Shown here one piece after another: positions 593 to 55,697 of a stretch of DNA of 64,000 bases. The notes beneath the pieces are model-generated. The model was not told the DNA's origin and made no database searches. It saw only the letters and a program-made list of their open reading frames with translations. Numbering within the stretch: the stretch's first letter is position 1; every line of letters begins with the position of its first letter. A program made the translations under genes and the position numbers. The stretch comes from Macrostomum hystrix (taxonomy: Eukaryota > Animalia > Platyhelminthes): contig CATNEN010000005.1 of the NCBI GenBank assembly GCA_950097015.1, forward strand, positions 3,534,001-3,598,000, given 5' to 3'.

Positions 593-3500
593 TTATCTGT
601 CAGCCACAATTTCTGTGTATACTGTAACGTCACTGACGGGTCGTGAGTTCGAGTCTCGGATTTCCGTGCTACCACAGTTTTGCTTCGGCATCATGGAGAA
701 ATAGATGCAGTTGTTGTCGTCCTAAATAGACAATTAAGTGGCAATTTTTAGCGACATAAGATAGATAGAAACTACACCGGTCGAGATAGCTCTTCAGTAG
801 AGTAATTTCTGCCACACCCACGTACACCAACTTTCTAGCCTAACTCATGCTGCAGTACCCATCACAATTTAAATGCATGAGATCAAGCTCGAGGGAATTA
901 AATGTAGTCGGAAGTTCTCAATGACGCTCTAACAACAGGGCCACAAGCTCCCCTGTAGCGCACTGTACTAAATATAAACATGATATGGTACAGATCTATA
1001 ACAGCCTTACATCTGTATTGTTTAAACCTGGTGCATCCGTAGTTGAAAGCTGCTGCAATGGCACCGGCACCTCCTCGGACATCGCTGCTTTCAACACCTG
1101 TACGGGAGGCCCTTGTGTTGAGGTCATCTGCGGGGGTGCAGAGTGGCATTGAGTGAGTTAACGTGTTTGCCTCTCACACCAACTGAGGTCCCTGAGCTCG
1201 ATTCCGCGGTGAGACCACATTCATTTAGGGCGCAGCCGCGCAAAGAAGGCTTTGAGGGCTTGTGGTGCAATTTACGCCCTTGAGGGCCAGCCTCCAAGGC
1301 ACAGTGAAAGTGTACACTGCCTGACGATGAGAAAGTCAGGGCAGATGTACACACTTGGTGAGTGTGTGCCTGCGTACAGTATCTGTGTGCCTGTTTGATC
1401 AGGAGTAAGCGGAATGGGCAAAATTGCCTTCTCGCTGGCTGCGGGTCTAGTGACACCAAATGATGTGCCATTGCCCGCAGCCCTCCTGCAAATATTTTTA
1501 TATTGTTATGAGGTCATCTGCAGTCTATGTACCATGAGTAACGATCGAAACTTAAAATAATAAAACGCTTTGTTTGCAAAGCAAGACTTGCAAAAGTTAC
1601 CTTTCTTCGGTAAATGAAAGTGACGGCTGATATGACAAAAACATTCGCAAACATTAGACCCACGGCCAAGAGGACGAACATCAGAAGATCTTGATTGCGG
1701 TCTATAAATAATCAGGTAATGTTATGAAGTTCAATTCAATAATAAGCTGGTCCTCGATCACTAAACGCATACTCACCGCAATCAGATTTAATACTTGTGC
1801 AAAGGGTTTTCACAGTCACATTTGAGAGCCATGTAACATTCGCTTGAGCAGCAGTGCATTCTAACTTAAGTTGAGCTTCCTTGTTTCCACTGCAGCAGTT
1901 AAGGCACCTCCAATGTGATGTCAGGGACTCACTGAAATCACTGCTCAAGCTTTTATTCGCTGCATCACTGGATGACACATTTAAGTTGTTTCCCATGTTG
2001 TCAAACGCTACGCACTGATGCTCTGATTTCGGATCTGAGGTGGAAGACGTGAAGCTGAATGTCACGTGACCAAATGACTCGGCGCTGCAGCTTGACAGCT
2101 TGTCAACCGCGATTCTCAAATTTTTTGGCGGATCTGTTACGTAACGAACGCGATAAATGCGTTTTATGCAAAAATAAAACTAGGCCTAGTTGAACTAGCT
2201 ATGGATAACTCACACAAAACCCGCAGTCTTCGAGTACTGGATGCTTCAAGACCAGTTCCACCTGAACTGCAGGTGTAGCTCCCCCCATGGTGCAACTCCA
2301 GCTGATGAATTGTGTAAGTTCGGTTTCCACTGTCCAACGTCACATTGAAAGTTGAATGGGTGAGTCTGATTGGCTCTGAGAGAACAACTGGGCAGAGTAC
2401 ATGGCATTGCACGGTCACACTGGAGCCAAGCTCTGCTGCGTTGTTGAATGCGCTCGCTGGATGAAACAGGGCTGCAATTTTGGGGACGGCTTAGTAACGG
2501 ATTTTCTAATTTTAGATATAGGTATGAAATTTTATTCGCTGTATTGTTGTACCTACTTTCCAAAGTAATACTCCGATTAATCCACATGTCGACAAAGCTC
2601 AGGCACTGGCGCACAAATTGAGTTTCGTTTGCAACATTTCTTCTTAAAATAATTATTCTCACCTATAAAATGTACATGAGTAGAATTTTGTCTTGACAGG
2701 TCAAATGGCTGTTGACGAGCAGTCAATATAAATATTTTCTGGAAATTTTCGTTATGCTGCAAAAAGAGTCGTGATTAGACTGATCACAAAAAACTTGCTC
2801 AACTTCATGTTTAAGCTTTTACCCACTAGTAGGGGACTATATTAATAGTCCAGACTTTTACGTAAAGGTCGACAGCTCGAATCTCGGTCCAGGGGAGGCA
2901 GTTAGACTTCTTGCTCAAGCAAGACACGAAATTCATTAGTCAGTTGTAAAACGGGTGCCAGATTCAGCTGGGGTAGAAATTGGGTGGGTTTGAAGGCTTC
3001 CACAGTCCACGGACTGAACGAATTTACTGTGGCTTTTCCACTGGCTGCATTATCCGCATCAGAATTATGAGTGTAAATACAAAATACTTAGTAATTTTTT
3101 AGAAAGAATAGTATTTTCGTTCTGTCAAACTTTTATGATTACCTTATGTCTAGCGCAGTTCACAGTCAAGATTTTCCCAGAAGATACGCTGGTTGGCGTC
3201 CTTCCGCACAGCCTCCAGGTTCCGTTTTCCGCCCCCTGAAAGACGGAGCTGATGTTTCTCAAGTCGCAGTGGTTCGAGCCGAAGTCCAGGTCTTCCGGCG
3301 ACGTCCACACCTCAATGTCTGCTGCTCGAGCGGTCAAATTGTCTCCGTAGGTCGTAAGTTCATATTGACTCAAAGCTTTTAAGTTGAGAAAAAATATCTG
3401 TATTAAAAAAGCAACTTGGGCGTTTTATATGGCAGGATAAAATCACAGGGAAGAGAAGTGCTCACTTCTCCCTCTGATGGACACAGAGCTGATGCTCTCC

Positions 3501-3865
3501 TGCTGTCTCAGTTTTATCACAAACCAGTGGAATCCGGCATCAGCGCTTTGCAGACCTTCCTTGGAGTGAAGAAATGGCCAGTTGCCAACTTCATCAGCTG
3601 AGCGACTCCAGAAGCAAGTGCTCGGTGCAGGTTGATCCAAGCTGGATGACTGCCATGATGCTTCAATGGTGCTCTTTCTGATTGGAAGCATACCACCTGT
3701 TTGAAGCAATTGGGTTAACAAACAATGGAAAGCATTATAGATACATAAATCCAAATTTGGAAAACCTGACCGTGCCAGCTCACATCTGTCTGAGTCCCCT
3801 CGACTCAGAAGAATGGCGAATCCAAGAAAAGCCAGGGTGACACGCAACACAGCCAGATGGTCCAT
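593..3865 (-). CDS. Receptor copy A: signal peptide - F-type-lectin-like domain - Ig - Ig-like - TM - Tyr-motif tail (spliced, apparently intact)
   Basis: Phase-consistent GT-AG exons: 3865-3784 (MDHLAVLRVTLAFLGFAILLSRGDSD), 3696-3466 (SWQSSS..FLHS..HWFVIKL..ISSVSIRGR), 3375-3143 (RAADIEVW..CGRTP..LTVNC), 2662-2557, 2471-2214 (Ig: VTVQC..GGSYTC), 2133-1777 (YPP..Ig-like), 1701-1601 (TM LLMFVLLAVGLMFANVFVISAVTFIYRRK), 1127-1011, 721-593 (CIYFSM..TVYTEIVADR*). The junction between the last two exons is least certain. Confidence 0.75.
1132..1508 (+). mobile_element. tRNA-derived SINE family 1, complete, with 13-bp TSD
   Basis: TSD TGAGGTCATCTGC at 1119-1131 and 1509-1521. A/B-box-like head, hairpin CTGCCTGAC-GATGAGAAA-GTCAGGGCAG, AT-rich tail. 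Confidence 0.85.
2860..3020 (+). mobile_element. SINE family 2 (CORE-like) in intron 3 of copy A
   Basis: GCAAGACAC..CAGTTGTAAAACGGGTGCCAG..CAGCTGGGGTA shared with the element at 34690-34901. Confidence 0.55.
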
Positions 3866-28365: not shown

Positions 28366-30267
28366 TACCCTGCAGCGGCTAGGCTGAAACACGCAATTGT
28401 CCGAGGCAGCTCTACCCACAGTGGCGCACGTCAGTATATATTGTGACGGCGAAGCGCAGATCAGATAAATACTTCATGCTGTGAATGTTGCATGCGACTT
28501 GGTCGAGACCAAACCATTTGACTAATAGTTTATAGTCATAGTCAATAGTTTAAAATATCTAGAATTTTATGAATTGAAAATATACTTTTGAACCTTTGAA
28601 CCCCAGATTTTGTTTACGGTTATTCGTCTAAACAATTCGTTTTTTACCTATGCATTTTGCTAGCGATGCGATTTAATTGGGTAGATATCGACCACGACTG
28701 CTTTGATCGCGTTATCAGGGCTTTGTCTTATCCACACACGCAATAGATTGTTTACTCATTGTTTACGCAAGCGTGTTTTGCGGGCTTAAAGCACTGAGAC
28801 TTAACTCTCAAGTACAAACGATTAGAAGATTCTGCATGTTTATTCGAACTGAATCAGCTGCATGCGTAGAAACATTTTGGACAGGAGACGCAGGGCACCC
28901 GAACTGCAACGAATATGCATCATGCTAAACCTATGGCATGAGACAGGTAAGCCTATTGTAGGAGATAGGTCCAGCAGCAGCATCCATTCACGGACTACTG
29001 TTCATTGTGATTGTAAAACCGATAAGTAGTCATTGCGGGCAGTTTGTCTCAGAGGGAGCACAAACCAAATTTAGTGCGATTGCAAAGTACTGAATAAGCA
29101 TAAAGACTTGATACGAAGACTCAGCGCAGAGCTTTCAGGCACACTTGTTTAACAAAAGCCTTCTGTTTTACCGGCAGAAACTGTCGAAACATATAAACAG
29201 GACTCAGTCAAAAACAAAACATTTTCCGGTCTAAAAATAGTATTGGTTTCACGGCAAACGGTATGATTAATTAGGAAGGCTAGTTCTGTCACCGCATTCA
29301 TGAGTACATCATCCAACAGTGACTGAATTCGTGCTGAATATCATATTAATCAAATCTGCCATGGATAAAATGTTCCAAGAGTAGGCACAGTGAAAGCTGT
29401 CAGCACATGCAGTTCATTCCGTGTCGATAGCAAAATCAGTTTCCGAATCATCAGTTCCAGCATGATCACCTCCAGCAATGCAGCGCATTCAACACGCATT
29501 GGAGCTAAGCTTCGATGTAGATGCTCGCTCGAGATGGTCGAGCTGCCGACATCTTGATGGCTTGCTGGCGCTCAACAATGGCCAGCTGCCTCTGAAACAG
29601 TTGAGCACTGATTTATCAAAGCCAGATTTCATAAAAAGTTTGTCAGGTAAAGCTGCTACCTTTGTTTTCACCAGATAACCGCAAACGCTCAAGAGTGCCG
29701 CGGTGAGAACAGCAATGAGCAACCAAGGAAGCCAGATCACTGAGCACACTTGCCTTGGCTGCATGTCGGATTTCGTTGCAGCTGAAATCACAGAGCAGCG
29801 AGCATCAAATTTCATTGCGACTGATTTTCTACAAAAGCTTAAACTCTTCTTACACTTCTGTTTCCAGTCGATGCTTATTTTGTATGGATTGATATTGTTA
29901 TTGATGTCATCTCCGTAGGACTTTGCGAGAGTCAGAATTGGCAGATTGACAGGTGCTTCATGGCACACCAAAAGTTTCCTCAATACCGCGACAGTCGCAA
30001 CACTTTTCCAAGTTACTTTGATATACTCGGTATCGAATGAAAAATAGTGTGGAATAATACTCACCTGGTGCTTTATTGAAAAATATTTATTTATAGATTT
30101 GACTCTATATGCCAATTAGCTTAACACATGTTTGCCTTTTACTTAGCAAAATTTTAATGGCAAATCGTTGAGGAAACTCACCTTCTATCACAAGTTTTCG
30201 AATCCACATGCCAATAAAGTTCATGCACTGGTTTCGTACATCAGTAACGTTTGCGACGTATTTTCTC

Positions 30268-30370
30268 GGGTGGGGGAGCCTTCGCGACCCCGAGCGCGCC
30301 TGGCGCGCTTCCCAATGCTGCCGCCTTCACGTGGCGGGACCGTTCGGACTCACCCCCGGCGAAGTGCAGC
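30268..30370 (+). ncRNA. Candidate HDV-like self-cleaving ribozyme at the LINE 5' end
   Basis: P3/L3 GCC-TTCACGT-GGC, J1.1/4 GT, P4 TCGG..CCGG, J4/2 CGAA, P2 GCTGC/GCAGC. The P1 5' strand is not clearly resolved. Confidence 0.5.
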
Positions 30371-33300
30371 GCTCACCCTGGACATCGTCTGGGGACAGGA
30401 CACCTCGGACACTGGCGACGTGGAGACCAACCCTGGGCCACCAACGTCGTACTCATGCGGTGGCTGCAGCACTAACGTCCACAGCTTTCGCATTTTACAA
30501 CTTAACGCGTCGCCTGTGTTCAGGAGACGAATTCGACGGCGTCCGGGTCCCTCCCAAGACTGCCGGGCTGGCAAATTGCCGCCCGCAGGGACCGTCGAGC
30601 CAATCGCGCTGGCGAGCCGGCAGAGACGCCGCACGGCGGAGTCTGCTTCCTGATCAAAGAAGGTATCGACTTCTCCGAGCTCCAGATGCCACCCCCCAAG
30701 GCTGTCAACTCGGCCACGGAAGCCTCCGCGGTCACTATTCACGACCCGCGTATCAGCCGCCCACTCTCGATCATTAACCTCTACATCCCACCGGTCCGTG
30801 CAGGAGACGGACGGGTCAGCGACTTCGAACCAGACTGGCTCCCATCCGGCCCCGACACCGTTATCCTCGGCGACATTAACGCACACCACGGGATGTGGGA
30901 CGAGAGCTGCGAGACCGACGACGCCCTGGGGACCGAGTTCGAAAACTGGGCCACGACGTTCGACTACGTCGCGCTTAACGATGGCTCCTTCACCAGATTC
31001 AGCCCCAGAGGCCTGACCAGCGCCCCGGACGTGACCTTCGTCCCGGCCAACTGGCAAGACCGGATGACCTGGAAGACGGAGGCACACATCGGATCCGACC
31101 ATCTCCCTATTGTTATCGAGATTCGAAACAGCTCCAAGAGGCCCCCAAAGCGGAAACGGGTGACCCGCTTCGCCTACCATAAGGCAGACTGGACCCTATT
31201 CCGCGAGCTCATTTCCGAAGAACTCAAGCACTGGCAACACCGCCCACCACGCTCGGTCGCTGGTGCAACCGATAAACTGAACCACGCCATCCGTTCAGCG
31301 CTCGAGGAGCGATTCCGCAGGGCTAGCGCCGAGCCCCAGTAGCATGGTGGTGCCCTGAGGCCGAAGCCGCGTGCACCGCCAGACGTCAGGCCCTCGAAGC
31401 TCTCCGCACGGATCCTGACGACGAGCTCGCCGCGGCGTATCAAGCCGCGGGTGCTTTCGCCACCGCGTCCATCCGTAGGGCCAAGGAGGCACTCTGGCAA
31501 GAATTCATATCCGACAACCACAATAAACTGGACTCGGCCGCGATCTGGAGAATAATCCGAGTTCTCGACGGGCGGACACCGGCGGCCAGACCATCCGCAG
31601 CCATCAAGGACTCGGCCAACCGCTGCGCCACCACGAACTCACAAAAGGCCAACCTTTTCTGTAGAGAGTACGCAACGGTCGCGCAACTTCCTAAAGTCAA
31701 AGTGCGGGACCACAAAGTCAAACTTGAGGCCAGGAGAGCCCTTGATAAGCCCTGTGCGTGCAACGGACAACGCCTGGGAATGTGTGCTGACTTCGACCTA
31801 GAGGCGCTCACCCGAGCCCTCCGCGCCATCCCGAGCCGGTCCGCCCCAGGGCTAGACGGGAAATCCAACTTGATGCTGAAGAATCTGCCGCCAAAGGGGA
31901 TCGAGCTCCTCCTCTTCACCATCAACCTTTCTTGGCGTAGCGGCCAGTGTTGCGCTGCCTGGAAAATCGGCGACATCAGGCCGATACACCAGCCGGGGAA
32001 AAGCCCGGATGCGACCTCCAGCTACGGCCCCATCTGCCTCCTTTCCTGCACGGCGAAAGTCGCGGAACGTCTGGTTAACGAACGCCTCACGCAATACCTG
32101 GAGTCCGAGAACCTCATCCACCCGGCCCAGGCCGGCTTCCGCCGCGGTCGCTCTACTGAAGAGCAGATTGCCGCGGCATCCCAGTACGTCTTCGACGGCT
32201 TCCAGAAGAAAAAACCAGCAAACCGTACAGCGATGCTGTTTGGGGACTTCTCGCATGCCTACGAGCGCATGTGGCGACAGGCCCTCATCGCTAAGTTAAG
32301 CCGTAAGAAAGTCCCGACCTGCACGCGCCGCTGGATTCACTCGTATATTTCCGATCGACGTGCCATTGTGACCTGGGACGGCAACCAGAGCCCCCAACGC
32401 CTCTTCCCTGAGGGCCTCCCCCAAGGCTCCGTCATCGCCCCGACTCTGTGGACGGTGTTCGTCGATGACCTGTTGGAGGATGCCTCAGAGGACATCTTCT
32501 CTCTGGCGTACGCCGACGATATACGACCTTTGGCGCACAAGGCATGAATTTGAAGACCTATGAAGCAAGACTGCAAAGCGCGGCGAACTGGCTCGTCGAG
32601 TGGTGCACGACTGGGAAAGTTGACCTGAACAAATCCAAAACGGTCGTCACCTACTTCTCCCTCGACCCACGTGAGACAAACGGCAAGGCGAGACCGAATA
32701 TCAGACTCGGAGACATGCCAGCCCCATTCGAGGAACACCCCAAGATGCTGGGCGTGTACCTCGATTCACAGCTCACGTTCCGCCACCATGCGGCGGTCCA
32801 AAAGCGCAACCTGCAGAAGCGGACAGGCGCCCTGAGGTGCCTTGCTGGTCGAGACTGGGGCGCGACCCGAGATCTCTCAGACAGCTCTACCGCACCTACG
32901 CGGAAGCGGCGGTCCTACACGGCGCCTCCTCTTGGATGAGCTTTGCGTCCGACGCCTGAGTCCGGCGAAGTTGAGACCCAGCACCTCGCCGCAGCGCGCG
33001 TTATCTCGGGGTGCTGCCGATCCACCCCGACTGCCGCGCTCCTCAAAGAGGCCGGGCTGGCTCCACTCAACACCTCGGCGACTGCCGCTGCGGCTACGCT
33101 GGAGAAAACCCGGCGAGCAAGACAACAGACACCGCTCAGAACGCTGGCCGAACTCGACGTTCAACCGAGAATCCGCGCTCACGGCAACCACGGCGATTTC
33201 AGACGCAACTGGAGGACGGAGGCCAACGGATTGATCGCCCACGCGGGCCTCGCGGGATCCAAGCGCGAACCTGACAACGTGCCACCGCCTCCCCTATCGC

Positions 33301-34286
33301 CTAACGACAGACAGGAGCCACTTCGCAGCGGAACTCGTCAAACCTACCAACCGGGAGGATCCCCCGCACGTCAGACGCCAAGCCGCACTGGAGACGCTGA
33401 ACCGGCTTCCGGAACCCGCCTTGGCACTCTGGACCGACGGCTCGGCCTCCGGAGGCACCAATAGAGGCGGATACGGTGCGGCCCTATTCATCCGCGGAGC
33501 CGCGCCAGTCTACCTGACTGCTCCAGCGGGCGCTTTCAGCTCTTCTTTTAGGGCGGAGGAGTGTGCCCTCCGCATTGGTCTCCTCGCAGCCCTGGAGCGC
33601 GTCTCATCGCCCGGTACGGCAGAACTGCGTTGCGCGCCACTGATTCGCAGGCCCTCATCCGATCGCTCGAACAAGGCCCGCACTCTCACCTGTCCCCCTG
33701 CTGCCGGGACATCTGGCGCCTCCTCATCAAAGTCCCCGCGGACCACCACGTGACTATCCAATGGGTCCCAGGACACTGTGACCTGAGGCGCAACGATCTG
33801 GCGGACAACCTCGCAAAAGACGCCGCTAGACTCCCACAAGACCAAGCGGAAATCGACCTAAACAGTGCCAAGTCCGCGATCCGCCGCATACTGGCCGCCG
33901 AGGCTCGCGATGCCTACGAAGTGGACCCGCACTGCCGGACGCACCGCGCTGCCTTCCGCGACGACCACAGATCCGAGGCGACTCTCAGCAGACGCGAGCT
34001 GATCACGCTAGCGCAACTTCGCACGGGCCACTCGCCTCTGCTGGCCCAGTACCGCCACCGGATTGACCAAGAACAGCCCGCGTCCTGCGGGCACTGCGGA
34101 CACCAGGAGGAGGACCTGAAGCATGTGATGCTGGAATGCCCAGCTCACGCCCAGACCCGCAACCGCGTCCTCGGCCCTAACCCGACGCTGGCCATCCTCT
34201 CCGACGACGGCCCCCGTGTCCTGTCCTATCTCCAGGCGATAGGGTCGCTGACCCGACCCCCGGACCTGCCCGGCCAGGAACGTCTA
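30268..34286 (+). mobile_element. Non-LTR retrotransposon, Ingi/I-group type, apparently full-length but frameshifted
   Basis: 12-bp TSD ACGTATTTTCTC at 30256-30267 and 34287-34298. APE motifs RILQLNA, INLYIPP, ILGDINAHH, GSDHLPI. RT motifs APGLDG, QAGFRRGRST, GLPQGSVIAPTLW, AYADD. RNase H motifs WTDGS, TDSQA, WVPGH..NDLADNLAK. C-terminal CGHC..HVMLEC knuckle. Confidence 0.92.
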
Positions 34287-34689
34287 ACGTATTTTCTCAG
34301 CAGAATCATTCGGACCTGAAAGCCGCACAAATTTCTGGTTATCTCATCACTATTTAGATTTGGGTGAACTGCTAGACAAATTTCAACAGATGCAAAAGAA
34401 TCTTGTCCCTAAAGTGTGACTCACATTCTCGGCTCAATTAAAATCGACCTGGGCGCTTTCTTAGCTTTTATTAACCTCAAAATTTAGTCTGTGTCAAGGC
34501 AATTGACTGAAAAAACGTGGATTTTTTCTCGGAGAAACAATCAGGTAACCATAGTGTATTTTTTACATGCAATTCACTGAGCTGTCAACCGCTTGCTTAT
34601 GAGTAACAGTTGGCTGATTACACCTGCTTAATTGGACCAGATGTGCTGCCGACAGCACAGCCGCAGCTGTTGCGCGGCGCATCTAAAGG

Positions 34690-34901
34690 CTGCGTACAGT
34701 CCATGGACTAGGGCACGCCACACCCACCTTCAATTACCCCAGCTGATTCTGGTACACATTTAACAGCTGGATGAACTGAAGCAATGCAGAGGTAAGTGTC
34801 TTGCTAAACAACTCAAATTGTTCCAATGAAGTCAGGAATAGAACACCCAGAAACTCGCTTCAAGGTGTGGGTTTGACGCTTTAACGACTAAGCTTCAACC
34901 C
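34690..34901 (-). mobile_element. SINE family 2 copy in intron 3 of pseudogene C
   Basis: tRNA-like head plus TTTAGCAAGACACTT..CAGCTGTTAAATGTGTACC on the minus strand. Confidence 0.6.
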
Positions 34902-47110: not shown

Positions 47111-47679
47111 TCGCAGGGTTTTCTGCGTTTGTCATGAGGCTTAGATTTGCAGTATTTAAAAGTTCTGTCACTAAAAGGGGTTTGGCTATAAATTATTTGC
47201 CTTTTTGAGCAAAAAAATGTGACAGTGACATGAGAATCACACAAACTTCTATTATTTTGTTTACGAGTAAAAAAACTGTTGCTTTTTCTGCTAATGCTTT
47301 TTGGTAGATCTACACTTCACTTTGAGCAATCTGTCATATATTTGTGTAACGTTTGAACGTTTAGATCAATTTCGCATTTTTTCGATACACTTTTTATCTA
47401 AGAGTCTAATTTGTCCAATCAATTTCCACTTACATTTGGTCTTTCTTTCATTGAGGAGAAAAACCGATTGCTTTGATTGTAATATCGAGTCTTTCAATTA
47501 CGGAAAAAAACTAACCTATGTTGTGTATAGTCAACTCAGGCCCTTGACCTAACTACGTATATTTTCCTGCCTTTTGTTTAGCCATTTCGTGCCAAGAATG
47601 TGAAACGATTGCAACTCTCTTTAGCCAGATTAATAAGTCCTTTAATGGCCGGAAAATCTAAGCATACAAATTTCATCAT

Positions 47680-50600
47680 TTATCCCAATCCGTCTCTTCC
47701 CAATCGCATTTCTTCCCCATCCCGTCTCTTCCCAATCCCGTCTCTTCCCCATCCCGTCTCTTCCCAATCCCGTCTCTTCCCCATCCGTCTCTTCCCAATC
47801 CCGTCTCTTCCCAATCCCGTCTCTTCCCAATCCCGTCTCTTCCCAATCCCGTCTCTTCCCAATCCCGTCTCTTCCCCATCCCGTCTCTTCCCCATCCCGT
47901 CTCTTCCCAATCCCGTCTCTTCCCCATCCGTCTCTTCCCAATCCCGTCTCTTCCCAATCCCGTCTCTTCCCAATCCCGTCTCTTCCCAATCCCGTCTCTT
48001 CCCAATCCCGTCTCTTCCCAATCCCGTCTCTTCCCAATCCCGTCTCTTCCCCATCCCGTCTCTTCCCAATCCCGTCTCTTCCCCATCCCGTCTCTTCCCA
48101 ATCCCGTCTCTTCCCCATCCGTCTCTTCCCAATCCCGTCTCTTCCCAATCCCGTCTCTTCCCAATCCCGTCTCTTCCCAATCCCGTCTCTTCCCAATCCC
48201 GTCTCTTCCCCATCCCGTCTCTTCCCCATCCCGTCTCTTCCCAATCCCATCTCTTCCCCATCCCGTCTCTTCCCCATCCCGTCTCTTCCCAATCCCGTCT
48301 CTTCCCCATCCGTCTCTTCCCAATCCCGTCTCTTCCCAATCCCGTCTCTTCCCCATCCCGTCTCTTCCCCATCCCGTCTCTTCCCAATCCCGTCTCTTCC
48401 CAATCCCGTCTCTTCCCAATCCCGTCTCTTCCCAATCCCGTCTCTTCCCAATCCCGTCTCTTCCCAATCCCATCTCTTCCCAATCCCGTCTCTTCCCAAT
48501 CGCATTTCTTCCCAATTCCATCTCTTCCCAATCCCGTCTCTTCCCAATCCCGTCTCTTCCCAATCCCGTCTCTTCCCAATCCCGTCTCTTCCCAATCCCG
48601 TCTCTTCCCCATCCCGTCTCTTCCCCATCCCGTCTCTTCCCAATCCCATCTCTTCCCCATCCCGTCTCTTCCCCATCCCGTCTCTTCCCAATCCCGTCTC
48701 TTCCCCATCCGTCTCTTCCCAATCCCGTCTCTTCCCAATCCCGTCTCTTCCCCATCCCGTCTCTTCCCCATCCCGTCTCTTCCCAATCCCGTCTCTTCCC
48801 AATCCCGTCTCTTCCCAATCCCGTCTCTTCCCAATCCCGTCTCTTCCCAATCCCGTCTCTTCCCAATCCCATCTCTTCCCAATCCCGTCTCTTCCCAATC
48901 GCATTTCTTCCCAATTCCATCTCTTCCCAATCCCGTCTCTTCCCAATCCCGTCTCTTCCCAATCCCGTCTCTTCCCAATCGCATTTCTTCCCAATCCCAT
49001 CTCTTCCCAATCCCGTCTATTCCCAATCCCGTCTCTTCCCAATCCCGTCTCTTCCCAATCCCGTCTCTTCCCAATCGCATTTCTTCCCAATCCCATCTCT
49101 TCCCAATCCCGTCTATTCCCAATCCCGTCTCTTCCCAATCCCGTCTCTTCCCAATCCCGTCTCTTCCCAATCCCGTCTCTTCCCAATCCCGTCTCTTCCC
49201 AATCGCATTTCTTCCCAATCCCATCTCTTCCCAATCCCGTCTATTCCCAATCCCGTCTCTTCCCAATCCCGTCTCTTCCCAATCCCGTCTCTTCCCAATC
49301 CCGTCTCTTCCCAATCCCGTCTCTTCCCAATCGCATTTCTTCCCAATCCCATCTCTTCCCAATCCCGTCTATTCCCAATCCCGTCTCTTCCCAATCCCGT
49401 CTCTTCCCAATCCCGTCTCTTCCCAATCCCATCTCTTCCCAATCCCATTTCTTCCCAATCCTATCTCTTCTCAATGATCCTTCTCTTTCCAATCCCGTCT
49501 CTTCCCAATCGCATTTCTTCCCAATTCCATGTCTTCCCAATCCCGTCTCTTCCCAATCCCGTCTCTTCCCAATCGCATTTCTTCCCAATTCCATCTCTTC
49601 CCAATCCCGTCTCTTCCCAATCCCGTCTCTTCCCAATCCCGTCTCTTCCCAATCCCGTCTCTTCCCAATCCCGTCTCTTCCCCATCCCGTCTCTTCCCCA
49701 TCCCGTCTCTTCCCAATCCCATCTCTTCCCCATCCCGTCTCTTCCCCATCCCGTCTCTTCCCAATCCCGTCTCTTCCCCATCCGTCTCTTCCCAATCCCG
49801 TCTCTTCCCAATCCCGTCTCTTCCCCATCCCGTCTCTTCCCCATCCCGTCTCTTCCCAATCCCGTCTCTTCCCAATCCCGTCTCTTCCCAATCCCGTCTC
49901 TTCCCAATCCCGTCTCTTCCCAATCCCGTCTCTTCCCAATCCCATCTCTTCCCAATCCCGTCTCTTCCCAATCGCATTTCTTCCCAATTCCATCTCTTCC
50001 CAATCCCGTCTCTTCCCAATCCCGTCTCTTCCCAATCCCGTCTCTTCCCAATCGCATTTCTTCCCAATCCCATCTCTTCCCAATCCCGTCTATTCCCAAT
50101 CCCGTCTCTTCCCAATCCCGTCTCTTCCCAATCCCGTCTCTTCCCAATCGCATTTCTTCCCAATCCCATCTCTTCCCAATCCCGTCTATTCCCAATCCCG
50201 TCTCTTCCCAATCCCGTCTCTTCCCAATCCCGTCTCTTCCCAATCCCGTCTCTTCCCAATCCCGTCTCTTCCCAATCGCATTTCTTCCCAATCCCATCTC
50301 TTCCCAATCCCGTCTATTCCCAATCCCGTCTCTTCCCAATCCCGTCTCTTCCCAATCCCGTCTCTTCCCAATCCCGTCTCTTCCCAATCCCGTCTCTTCC
50401 CAATCGCATTTCTTCCCAATCCCATCTCTTCCCAATCCCGTCTATTCCCAATCCCGTCTCTTCCCAATCCCGTCTCTTCCCAATCCCGTCTCTTCCCAAT
50501 CCCATCTCTTCCCAATCCCATTTCTTCCCAATCCTATCTCTTCTCAATGATCCTTCTCTTTCCAATCCCGTCTCTTCCCAATCGCATTTCTTCCCAATTC

Positions 50601-55343: not shown

Positions 55344-55697
55344 ATATTGGCAGAGCGGTTAACGCGTTTGCCTCTCGCACCACGGTCCTGAGCTCGATTC
55401 CGCGGCGAGGCCGCATTCATTTGGGGCGCAGCGGTGGAGGCTTGGTGGCTTGTCGTGCAATTTACGCCCTCAAGGGCCAACCGCCAAGTCACAGTGACAG
55501 TGCACACTGCCGGACGATGAGAAAGTCAGGCCAGATGTACACACCTGTGTGAGCGTGTGCCTGCGTACAGTATCTGTGTGCGTGTGTGCTCAGGAGTCTG
55601 CGAAATGGGCAGAATTGCCTCCTCGCTGGCTGCGGGTCTAGTGTCACCAAAATGTGTGCCATTGCCCGCAGCCCTCCTGCAATTATTATTATTATTA
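55344..55697 (+). mobile_element. SINE family 1 copy with (ATT)n tail
   Basis: TGGCAGAGCGG A box and B-box-like GAGCTCGATTCC. Body aligns to 1132-1508. Confidence 0.8.

Follow-up and report, generated by a model that had tools for sequence, protein, structure and literature searches.

A receptor gene with a predicted cytoplasmic tail exon

We analyzed a window of 64,000 nucleotides from the flatworm Macrostomum hystrix (the whole stretch from 3,534,001 to 3,598,000 of contig CATNEN010000005.1; positions given without a contig name are those of the window). Near its start, an earlier note made from the DNA letters had pointed to a putative last exon at 721-593 on the minus strand, and had read in its translation a tandem pair of motifs resembling the immunoreceptor tyrosine-based inhibitory and switch motifs (ITIM and ITSM). 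Our analysis predicts that this is the last coding exon of a nine-exon gene for a type I membrane receptor, here called copy A, which belongs to a large family specific to Macrostomum. The exon is real and in frame, is under purifying selection, recurs throughout the family, and has been kept between two species. Its motifs may form a docking module for proteins that bind phosphotyrosine.

The model of copy A comprises nine open exons on the minus strand, whose intron phases all fit and which add up to 1611 coding bases, or 537 codons. The predicted receptor has a lectin-like head, an immunoglobulin (Ig)-like domain, a second extracellular domain, a transmembrane (TM) helix, and a cytoplasmic tail of 81 residues. 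Exon 1 (3784-3865, ending in phase 1) provides the start codon, with the ATG at 3865, and a hydrophobic leader that should act as signal peptide; its donor, gtgagc, is at 3783. The head is encoded in three parts: exon 2 (3466-3696, phase 1 to 1), which has homologous exons at more than 45 places in the genome, exon 3 (3143-3375, phase 1 to 0), identified by reading the gene exon by exon, and exon 4 (2557-2662, phase 0 to 1). The last of these was recognized only by comparison with a related gene, paralog C, and only with it in place do the phases of exon 3 and the Ig exon, which otherwise seem to clash, fit together. The head may resemble the F5/8 type C domain: two full-length M. lignano relatives reach 17.3 and 16.7 bits with Pfam PF00754, below the cut-off of 28.2 (E 0.005-0.008), and single exons of copy A gave no match to this family. 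The Ig-like domain corresponds to exon 5 (2214-2471, phase 1 to 1), which matches Pfam Ig_2, Ig_3, and V-set with E values of 6e-4 to 3e-3, all under the gathering cut-offs (20.5 bits for a cut-off of 27, 20.7 for 30, and 18.3 for 26, respectively). Exon 6 (1777-2133, phase 1 to 1) would encode the second extracellular domain, which has no family match, and a word search with the open frame around it found no match either.

Exon 7 (1601-1701, phase 1 to 0) encodes about 24 hydrophobic residues and then the basic stop-transfer sequence YRRK. It is followed by exon 8 (1011-1127, phase 0 to 0), the first cytoplasmic exon, with 39 codons, no tyrosine, and the donor gtaagg at 1010; the homologous exons share this end phase, both in paralog C and in M. 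lignano. Exon 9 (593-721) lies beyond an intron of 289 nt (722-1010). Its acceptor reads ...tctatttag, with the AG at 723-722, the open frame extends over 42 codons (721-596), and the TAA stop occupies 595-593. An AATAAA polyadenylation-type signal at 505-510 on the same strand, starting 83 nt past the stop codon, is consistent with a terminal exon. Exon 9 did not appear in the list of open reading frames because there is an in-frame stop directly upstream and no in-frame ATG; the earlier note had named the second of these reasons. Given the signal peptide, the ectodomain exons, the helix with its YRRK, and the in-phase exons 8 and 9, the two motifs are predicted to lie in the cytoplasm.

Rereading the minus strand returned the exon, the motif positions, and the tyrosine spacing just as they had been described. 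The 42-residue tail peptide starts with DDNNCIYFSM and ends with DVTVYTEIVADR. The proximal motif, CIYFSM (692-709), follows the family pattern E/N/S-C-x-Y-x-x-V/M/L/F, and the distal one, TVYTEI (608-625), the family pattern T-x-Y/F-x-E-I-V-A-D/V. The two tyrosines, Tyr7 and Tyr35 of the tail, are 28 residues apart, and the 81-residue cytoplasmic part has a single other tyrosine, at the membrane border. The earlier note had also suggested an additional motif, NTD|YSAL, created by splicing a 43-nt intron at 1010-968, within intron 8. The gt...ag ends are present. However, this reading stops after 12 codons, thereby ending the protein before the conserved tail. The motif matches neither of the two consensus sequences (ITIM or ITSM), and no paralog has a counterpart of it. 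The intron itself is missing from paralog C, which has a 78-nt intron, and from M. lignano, and the other modelled introns have 59-480 nt. The additional motif is thus not supported, although a minor isoform may use it. Because of a weak resemblance to a tRNA-like element (E 0.15), we considered whether exon 9 had been exonized from a tRNA-derived short interspersed nuclear element (SINE). This origin was rejected: ARAGORN detected no tRNA, and the exon has only chance words of 7-9 nt in common with the two SINEs of the gene.

The tail exon is kept across a family and between two species

Searching the genome with the tail alone retrieved a duplicate of the gene, A', and diverged copies at C5:4.24-4.31 Mb, whereas a profile of nine tails found 26 tail copies on contigs C5, C8, C38, and C39. 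Homologous last exons are present in 25 other receptor genes of the genome and in two of M. lignano. The nine tail copies of C5 are all located 3' of lectin-head exons on the same strand (9/9). Those of C8, C38, and C39 lie within or beside clusters of lectin exons, and several have same-strand lectin exons 2-6 kb upstream. Every tail exon that we inspected is preceded by a phase-0 acceptor. The exon order of copy A recurs in paralog C (C5:4281288-4279001), whose exon 8 ends in ...NSD|gtaag, with a phase-0 junction, and whose tail starts with GAC GGC after the 78-nt intron, as in copy A. In another paralog (C5:4307768-4307463) the equivalents of exons 8 and 9 are fused into one continuous open exon, hence both parts are read in one frame.

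The tail evolves as a coding sequence. Between copy A and paralog C the proportion of synonymous differences in the tail (pS) is 0.71 and that of nonsynonymous ones (pN) 0.26, with an omega of 0.15. A second pair of tails has an omega of 0.31, and a third differs by 2 synonymous and 0 nonsynonymous changes. Indels in the tails are all multiples of 3, and the tail of paralog C has stops in both other frames. Copy A and paralog C are 0.69 identical in exon 9 (z = 6.9 above shuffles); over the 78 nt upstream of it and the 120 nt downstream, their identity does not exceed the random level. The comparison between A and A' was set aside for this purpose, since about 99% identity in the 3' half of the gene makes the duplication too recent to inform on selection.

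The relatives in M. lignano came from a search with an open frame of 349 codons that occurs naturally in a distant paralog. The tails of P0004 and P0005 (BOX15_Mlig012084g1) read ECSYLSV...CTVYLEIVADAN, and the gene adjoining the P0005 locus encodes DCSYLTV...CTEFLKIVADGD. The P0005 tail is a separate last exon on NIVC01002544.1, with a phase-0 junction (...AVRK|TLRP...), and the copy A tail matches it directly (E 3e-5). The M. lignano annotation was made from RNA-seq and transcriptome assemblies, with open reading frames called on transcripts (PMC5730564). Hence, the homologous tail junction is supported by RNA in this species. When a profile of four tails was compared with 1.84 billion representative proteins, it returned three matches. 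The two that we read, to a bacterial repeat protein and to a sushi-repeat protein, were spurious, and the third was to a protein of 2669 residues with 13 short matches; this search thus revealed nothing outside Macrostomum. A word search with the 42-residue tail gave no candidates, as expected for a query of this length.

Could the tail be a chance match, in noncoding DNA or in a frame that is not the one used? The ITSM pattern arises in 2.3% of the shuffles of the copy A tail, and when the window is translated in six frames, about 0.5% of open stretches of 42 residues contain it, such that a single instance is in itself only mildly unusual. What raises the motif above chance is its conservation across the family, not the single match. 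The 28 homologous tails in two species, the omega values of 0.15-0.31, the in-frame indels, the stops in the other two frames of paralog C, and the restriction of conservation to exon 9 refute a chance origin, whose probability we regard as negligible. Exon 9 is a genuine terminal coding exon, selected in the frame that the earlier note had proposed and in phase after the TM and first cytoplasmic exons.

Two conserved motifs

We tallied the motifs over 28 tails (26 distinct) from the M. hystrix genome and from M. lignano. The two motifs of copy A are shared by at least 26 related genes and by the second species. The proximal motif has Cys at -2 and Tyr at its center in all 28 tails, a variable position +2, and Val (17), Met (6), Leu (4), or Phe (1) at +3; Glu is found at -3 in 19 of the 28. 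Copy A has a YxxM (YFSM), but the 6 tails with Met at +3 are a minority, and the family-level feature is therefore a Tyr followed by a hydrophobic residue at +3 rather than YxxM.

No other feature of the tail is as well conserved across the two species as the distal motif. It has Thr at -2 in 27 of 28 tails, Tyr (22) or Phe (6) at the central position, Glu at +2 in 24, and Ile at +3 in all of them, followed by Val at +4 (21), Ala at +5 (21), and Asp (15) or Val (11) at +6. The ITSM is defined as TxYxxV/I (PMC8211107), and this consensus fits copy A and 21/28 tails. The core T-x-Y-x-E-I-V-A lies four to eight residues from the C terminus, after a variable spacer of 20-30 residues; counted from the distal Tyr, 6 to 14 residues follow in most tails. 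The spacing between the two aromatic residues ranges from 24 to 33, which is within the range of vertebrate ITIM/ITSM pairs, the likeness that the earlier note had seen in copy A. In no tail is it compatible with an immunoreceptor tyrosine-based activation motif (ITAM), where two YxxL/I are 6-12 residues apart.

Some further features of the tails are worth recording. When nine tails are aligned, the residue five positions ahead of the distal Tyr is a Ser in every one. This Ser is preceded by S-R-P in the M. hystrix C5 paralogs, an R-x-x-S pattern, and it may be a serine phosphorylation site beside the tyrosine motif. At 1.2 kb downstream of paralog C (C5:4277779-4278059) there is a duplicated block that takes in the tail exon together with the intron before it and the last part of exon 8. 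This second tail has an omega of about 0.8 relative to the original and reads TFYQVIMAD; it probably represents either a pseudo-exon in decay or an alternative 3' end. In a subgroup of tails on C38 (at 16162269, 22225617, 22250116, 22430337, 22454937, and 27197967) the stop after ...IEIVAVGD has been lost and the frame extends for 14-33 codons, whereas the C8 relatives of this subgroup stop right after GD. Two identical tandem genes (C5:4244848-4247685 and 4252876-4255683) combine an Arg in the TM helix with a Phe-type tail (TVFLLIEHD), and a gene pair at C5 4258902 and 4269425 has the Phe-type tail without a charged TM residue. A general coupling between Phe-type tails and charged TM residues was thus discarded, since it holds for one gene pair only and the other Phe-type genes examined lack it.

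A SINE in exon 8 and a recent duplicate

The original exon 8 of copy A is interrupted by a SINE with a tRNA-like head (1132-1508, plus strand). On either side of it lies a 13-nt target-site duplication (1521-1509 and 1131-1119) that contains gcag|ATGACCTCA. Other copies of this element occur in the window, e.g., at 55358-55692 with 85.5% identity. The duplicated 13 nt include the splice acceptor and the first 9 bases of exon 8. Another SINE-like element, at 2780-3020, has a tRNA-type T-arm in antisense orientation. Its presence lengthens the intron that separates exon 3 from exon 4, and a partial copy of it is found at 34693-34769.

The exon 8 SINE is common to copy A and to its duplicate A' (C5:3505410-3508651), which lies 28.5 kb upstream. 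The two genes are 97.4% identical over 3.8 kb, introns included, and about 99% in their 3' half; the tails are 98% identical and the distal motif of A' is TEYTEI. A' lacks 22 nt (relative to window 3774-3795), including the donor of exon 1, and its exons 1-2 show additional gaps of 3 nt. Of the pair, it is copy A that is intact, exon 1 included.

Candidate partners and possible function of the tail

The M. hystrix genome encodes proteins that could read such a tail. We found 77 matches for SH2 domains and 98 for tyrosine phosphatases (PTP). Two loci, on C1 and C11, have the SH2-SH2-PTP architecture and match human SHP-2 from end to end, so the species does have the SHP2 orthologue for which the earlier note had proposed a pull-down. 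The 549-codon open frame at C1:10615034-10616578 aligns to residues 12-535 of human SHP-2 (E 2e-107), and the tandem SH2 region at C11:6341046-6347651 matches SHP-2 with E 7e-60. The arginines of the FL(L/A/I/V)R motifs of the SH2 domains are kept in both. A gene with tandem SH2 domains resembling Syk/ZAP-70 is also present. The C11 gene, the better of the two SHP-2 orthologues (C11:6339000-6348999), has about 4 kb of short tandem repeats coding for proline and tyrosine between its SH2 and phosphatase exons, and these yield very long spurious open frames (1185-1352 codons).

From the motifs and these candidates we propose, with even chances of being right, that the tail is a phosphotyrosine docking module with the distal TxYxEI as its main SH2 ligand. 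Upon engagement of the receptor, a Src-type kinase would phosphorylate both tail tyrosines. The distal TxYxEI, an exact ITSM-type sequence, could then dock an SH2-domain protein, the leading candidate being one of the two SHP-2-like phosphatases, while the proximal site (YxxM in copy A) would provide a second contact or recruit a different SH2 partner. The choice of an SHP-2-like phosphatase as specific partner, and with it an inhibitory sign, is doubtful. We infer phosphorylation, partner, and sign of the signal from sequence.

The following observations, some from the family and others from copy A, weigh against a docking module. First, the proximal motif never fits the ITIM, which is defined as I/L/V-x-Y-x-x-I/L/V (PMC12582321), or with Ser also allowed at -2: because the Cys at -2 is invariant, the consensus is found in 0/28 tails, and copy A in addition has Met at +3. 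Hence, the label of tandem ITIM/ITSM stands for the distal motif and falls for the proximal one. Second, Phe replaces the distal Tyr in 6/28 tails that keep Thr at -2, Ile at +3, and the residues that follow, with an omega of 0.31. Since these Phe-type tails are under purifying selection, part of the constraint must be independent of phosphotyrosine. Third, conservation of the distal motif reaches +4 to +6 (V-A-D/V), beyond the ITSM consensus. Fourth, in copy A the upstream acceptor (AG at 1519-1518) keeps the native 83-nt intron and leads into the sequence ATG ACC TCA TAA (MTS-stop), and its use would give a tailless product. Fifth, A and A' differ at 2 positions of exons 8-9, and both changes, Ser/Leu at 1120 and Val/Glu at 621, are nonsynonymous; the two copies are so alike, introns included, that they provide no measure of selection after the SINE had inserted.

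The Phe-type tails raise the possibility that the distal block T-x-Y/F-x-E-I-V-A-D is a peptide ligand of some other domain, bound independently of phosphorylation, or a processing site, with Tyr being merely one tolerated aromatic residue. The exchange of Tyr and Phe with conserved flanks, the conservation to +6, and the selection on Phe-type tails would all fit such a ligand, and the I-V-A-D and I-E-H-D endings resemble caspase-type sites. However, Tyr is found in 22/28 tails, including both species and all the major clusters. The Asp at +6 is replaced by Val in 11 tails, and cutting off 2-9 residues would have no obvious purpose. We consider this explanation rather improbable.

Both motifs could alternatively be tyrosine-based sorting signals (YxxPhi), read by the mu subunits of clathrin adaptors and leading to endocytosis or lysosomal delivery instead of phosphotyrosine signaling. 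The YxxPhi pattern fits the proximal motif in 28/28 tails and the distal one in all 22 tails that have the Tyr (YFSM and YTEI in copy A), and Y-x-E/T-I close to the C terminus is reminiscent of signals in lysosomal membrane proteins. Sorting and SH2 motifs also overlap in many vertebrate receptors. Yet mu subunits read the Tyr and position +3, which leaves unexplained the Cys and Thr at -2, the Glu at +2, and the V-A at +4/+5. The Phe variants would abolish binding of mu as well as phosphorylation, and the distal motif is about 75 residues away from the membrane. A sorting function in place of docking thus seems unlikely to us, somewhat less so than a peptide ligand or a processing site.

The points specific to copy A suggest another scenario, in which the tail is no longer made in A and A'. 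The SINE would leave a tailless receptor or a decayed transcript as the main product, and exon 9 would be a recently orphaned relic of a module that functions elsewhere in the family. The retained upstream acceptor with its native intron, the presence of the SINE in both copies, and the two nonsynonymous differences are in line with it. On the other hand, the downstream duplicated acceptor (AG at 1129-1128) has a more pyrimidine-rich tract and its use restores the exact original exon 8, keeping the tail. Both copies still have open frames in exons 8 and 9, and 2 differences are too few to show relaxed selection. Loss of the tail in copy A is possible, if not the outcome we expect, and it would leave room for a module that works elsewhere in the family.

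Other features of the window

Two further regions of the window stand out. A long satellite at 47600-50500 is made of about 180 copies of 16-nt (occasionally 15-nt) units, and the composition of its strands is extreme, with a GC skew of -0.80 in 48001-50000. A GC-rich block at 30200-34300 (58-63% GC, compared with about 43% elsewhere) contains on its plus strand open frames resembling an endonuclease, a reverse transcriptase (with YADD), and an RNase H; it is a retrotransposon without long terminal repeats.

Comparison with known receptors and implications

In its layout the predicted worm receptor is similar to PD-1, BTLA, PECAM-1, and the CD33-related Siglecs: these are type I proteins with an Ig-like ectodomain, two cytoplasmic tyrosines (24-33 residues apart in the worm tails), and a distal T-x-Y-x-x-I near the C terminus. 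TEYTEI and TVYTEI are very like the vertebrate distal motifs of the TEYSEI/TEYATI type. There is no sequence homology, however, and the worm family differs by its proximal C-x-Y-x-x-V/M/L/F, which is never an ITIM, and by a distal conservation that reaches Glu at +2, Val at +4, and Ala at +5. Like the Siglecs, the worm receptor would pair a head of a sugar-binding type with an Ig-like domain, but this head is F5/8-type-C-like (by weak matches) and not a V-set lectin. For the recruitment of SHP-2 by PD-1, a dual-site requirement has been described (PMC8211107).

Other comparisons concern the individual motifs. The worm distal motif fits the T-x-Y-x-x-V/I consensus of the ITSMs of the SLAM family, which bind SAP and EAT-2, and its Thr at -2 is near-invariant. 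In SLAM ITSMs this Thr is important, and such motifs could in principle tolerate an unphosphorylated or a Phe site. SLAM receptors, in contrast, lack a CxYxxPhi motif and have from two to four ITSMs. The YxxM of CD28, CTLA-4, and ICOS, a ligand for the SH2 domains of PI3K p85, has its parallel in copy A (YFSM), paralog C (YLSM), and another paralog (YSVM), but not in the family as a whole, where Met at +3 is limited to 6/28 tails (Val in 17, Leu in 4, Phe in 1).

Among invertebrates, Botryllus FcoR, with its "core" motifs and ITIMs (PMC12582321), and amphioxus BbLcLRR (PMC8211107) are also lineage-specific multigene families with tail motifs of the YxxI/L/V type, and the genomes of these animals also hold homologues of Src, Syk, and SHP. 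They differ from the worm in being deuterostomes and in having unrelated ectodomains. Some of these receptors have been tested for phosphorylation and phosphatase recruitment. We interpret the resemblance to the vertebrate, Botryllus, and amphioxus receptors as one of short motif and receptor layout, not of homology. Among the papers that we searched, seven mention both the ITIM and flatworms, and they describe no flatworm-encoded receptor of this kind.

The Macrostomum family of lectin-head genes, at least 26 of which bear the tail, could be an independently evolved flatworm counterpart of the paired immune receptors of vertebrates. Tyr-type tails would recruit SHP-2 and inhibit, and the Phe-type, tailless, or charged-TM copies with near-identical heads would be non-inhibitory or activating. 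This is a speculative proposal that we think more likely wrong than right by far. If true, it would mean that a lophotrochozoan has assembled the logic of the Siglecs and KIRs from unrelated parts.

Almost nothing is known about how flatworms recognize microbes, partners, or non-self. The module described here marks a large receptor family that duplicates rapidly, with SHP-2, Syk-like, and Src-type proteins as candidate partners. Its short conserved peptides can be tested directly, and M. lignano allows transgenesis. If the motif does signal through SHP-2, tyrosine-switch signaling of the PD-1/Siglec type would extend to the Platyhelminthes, by way of a receptor family that is unrelated in sequence.

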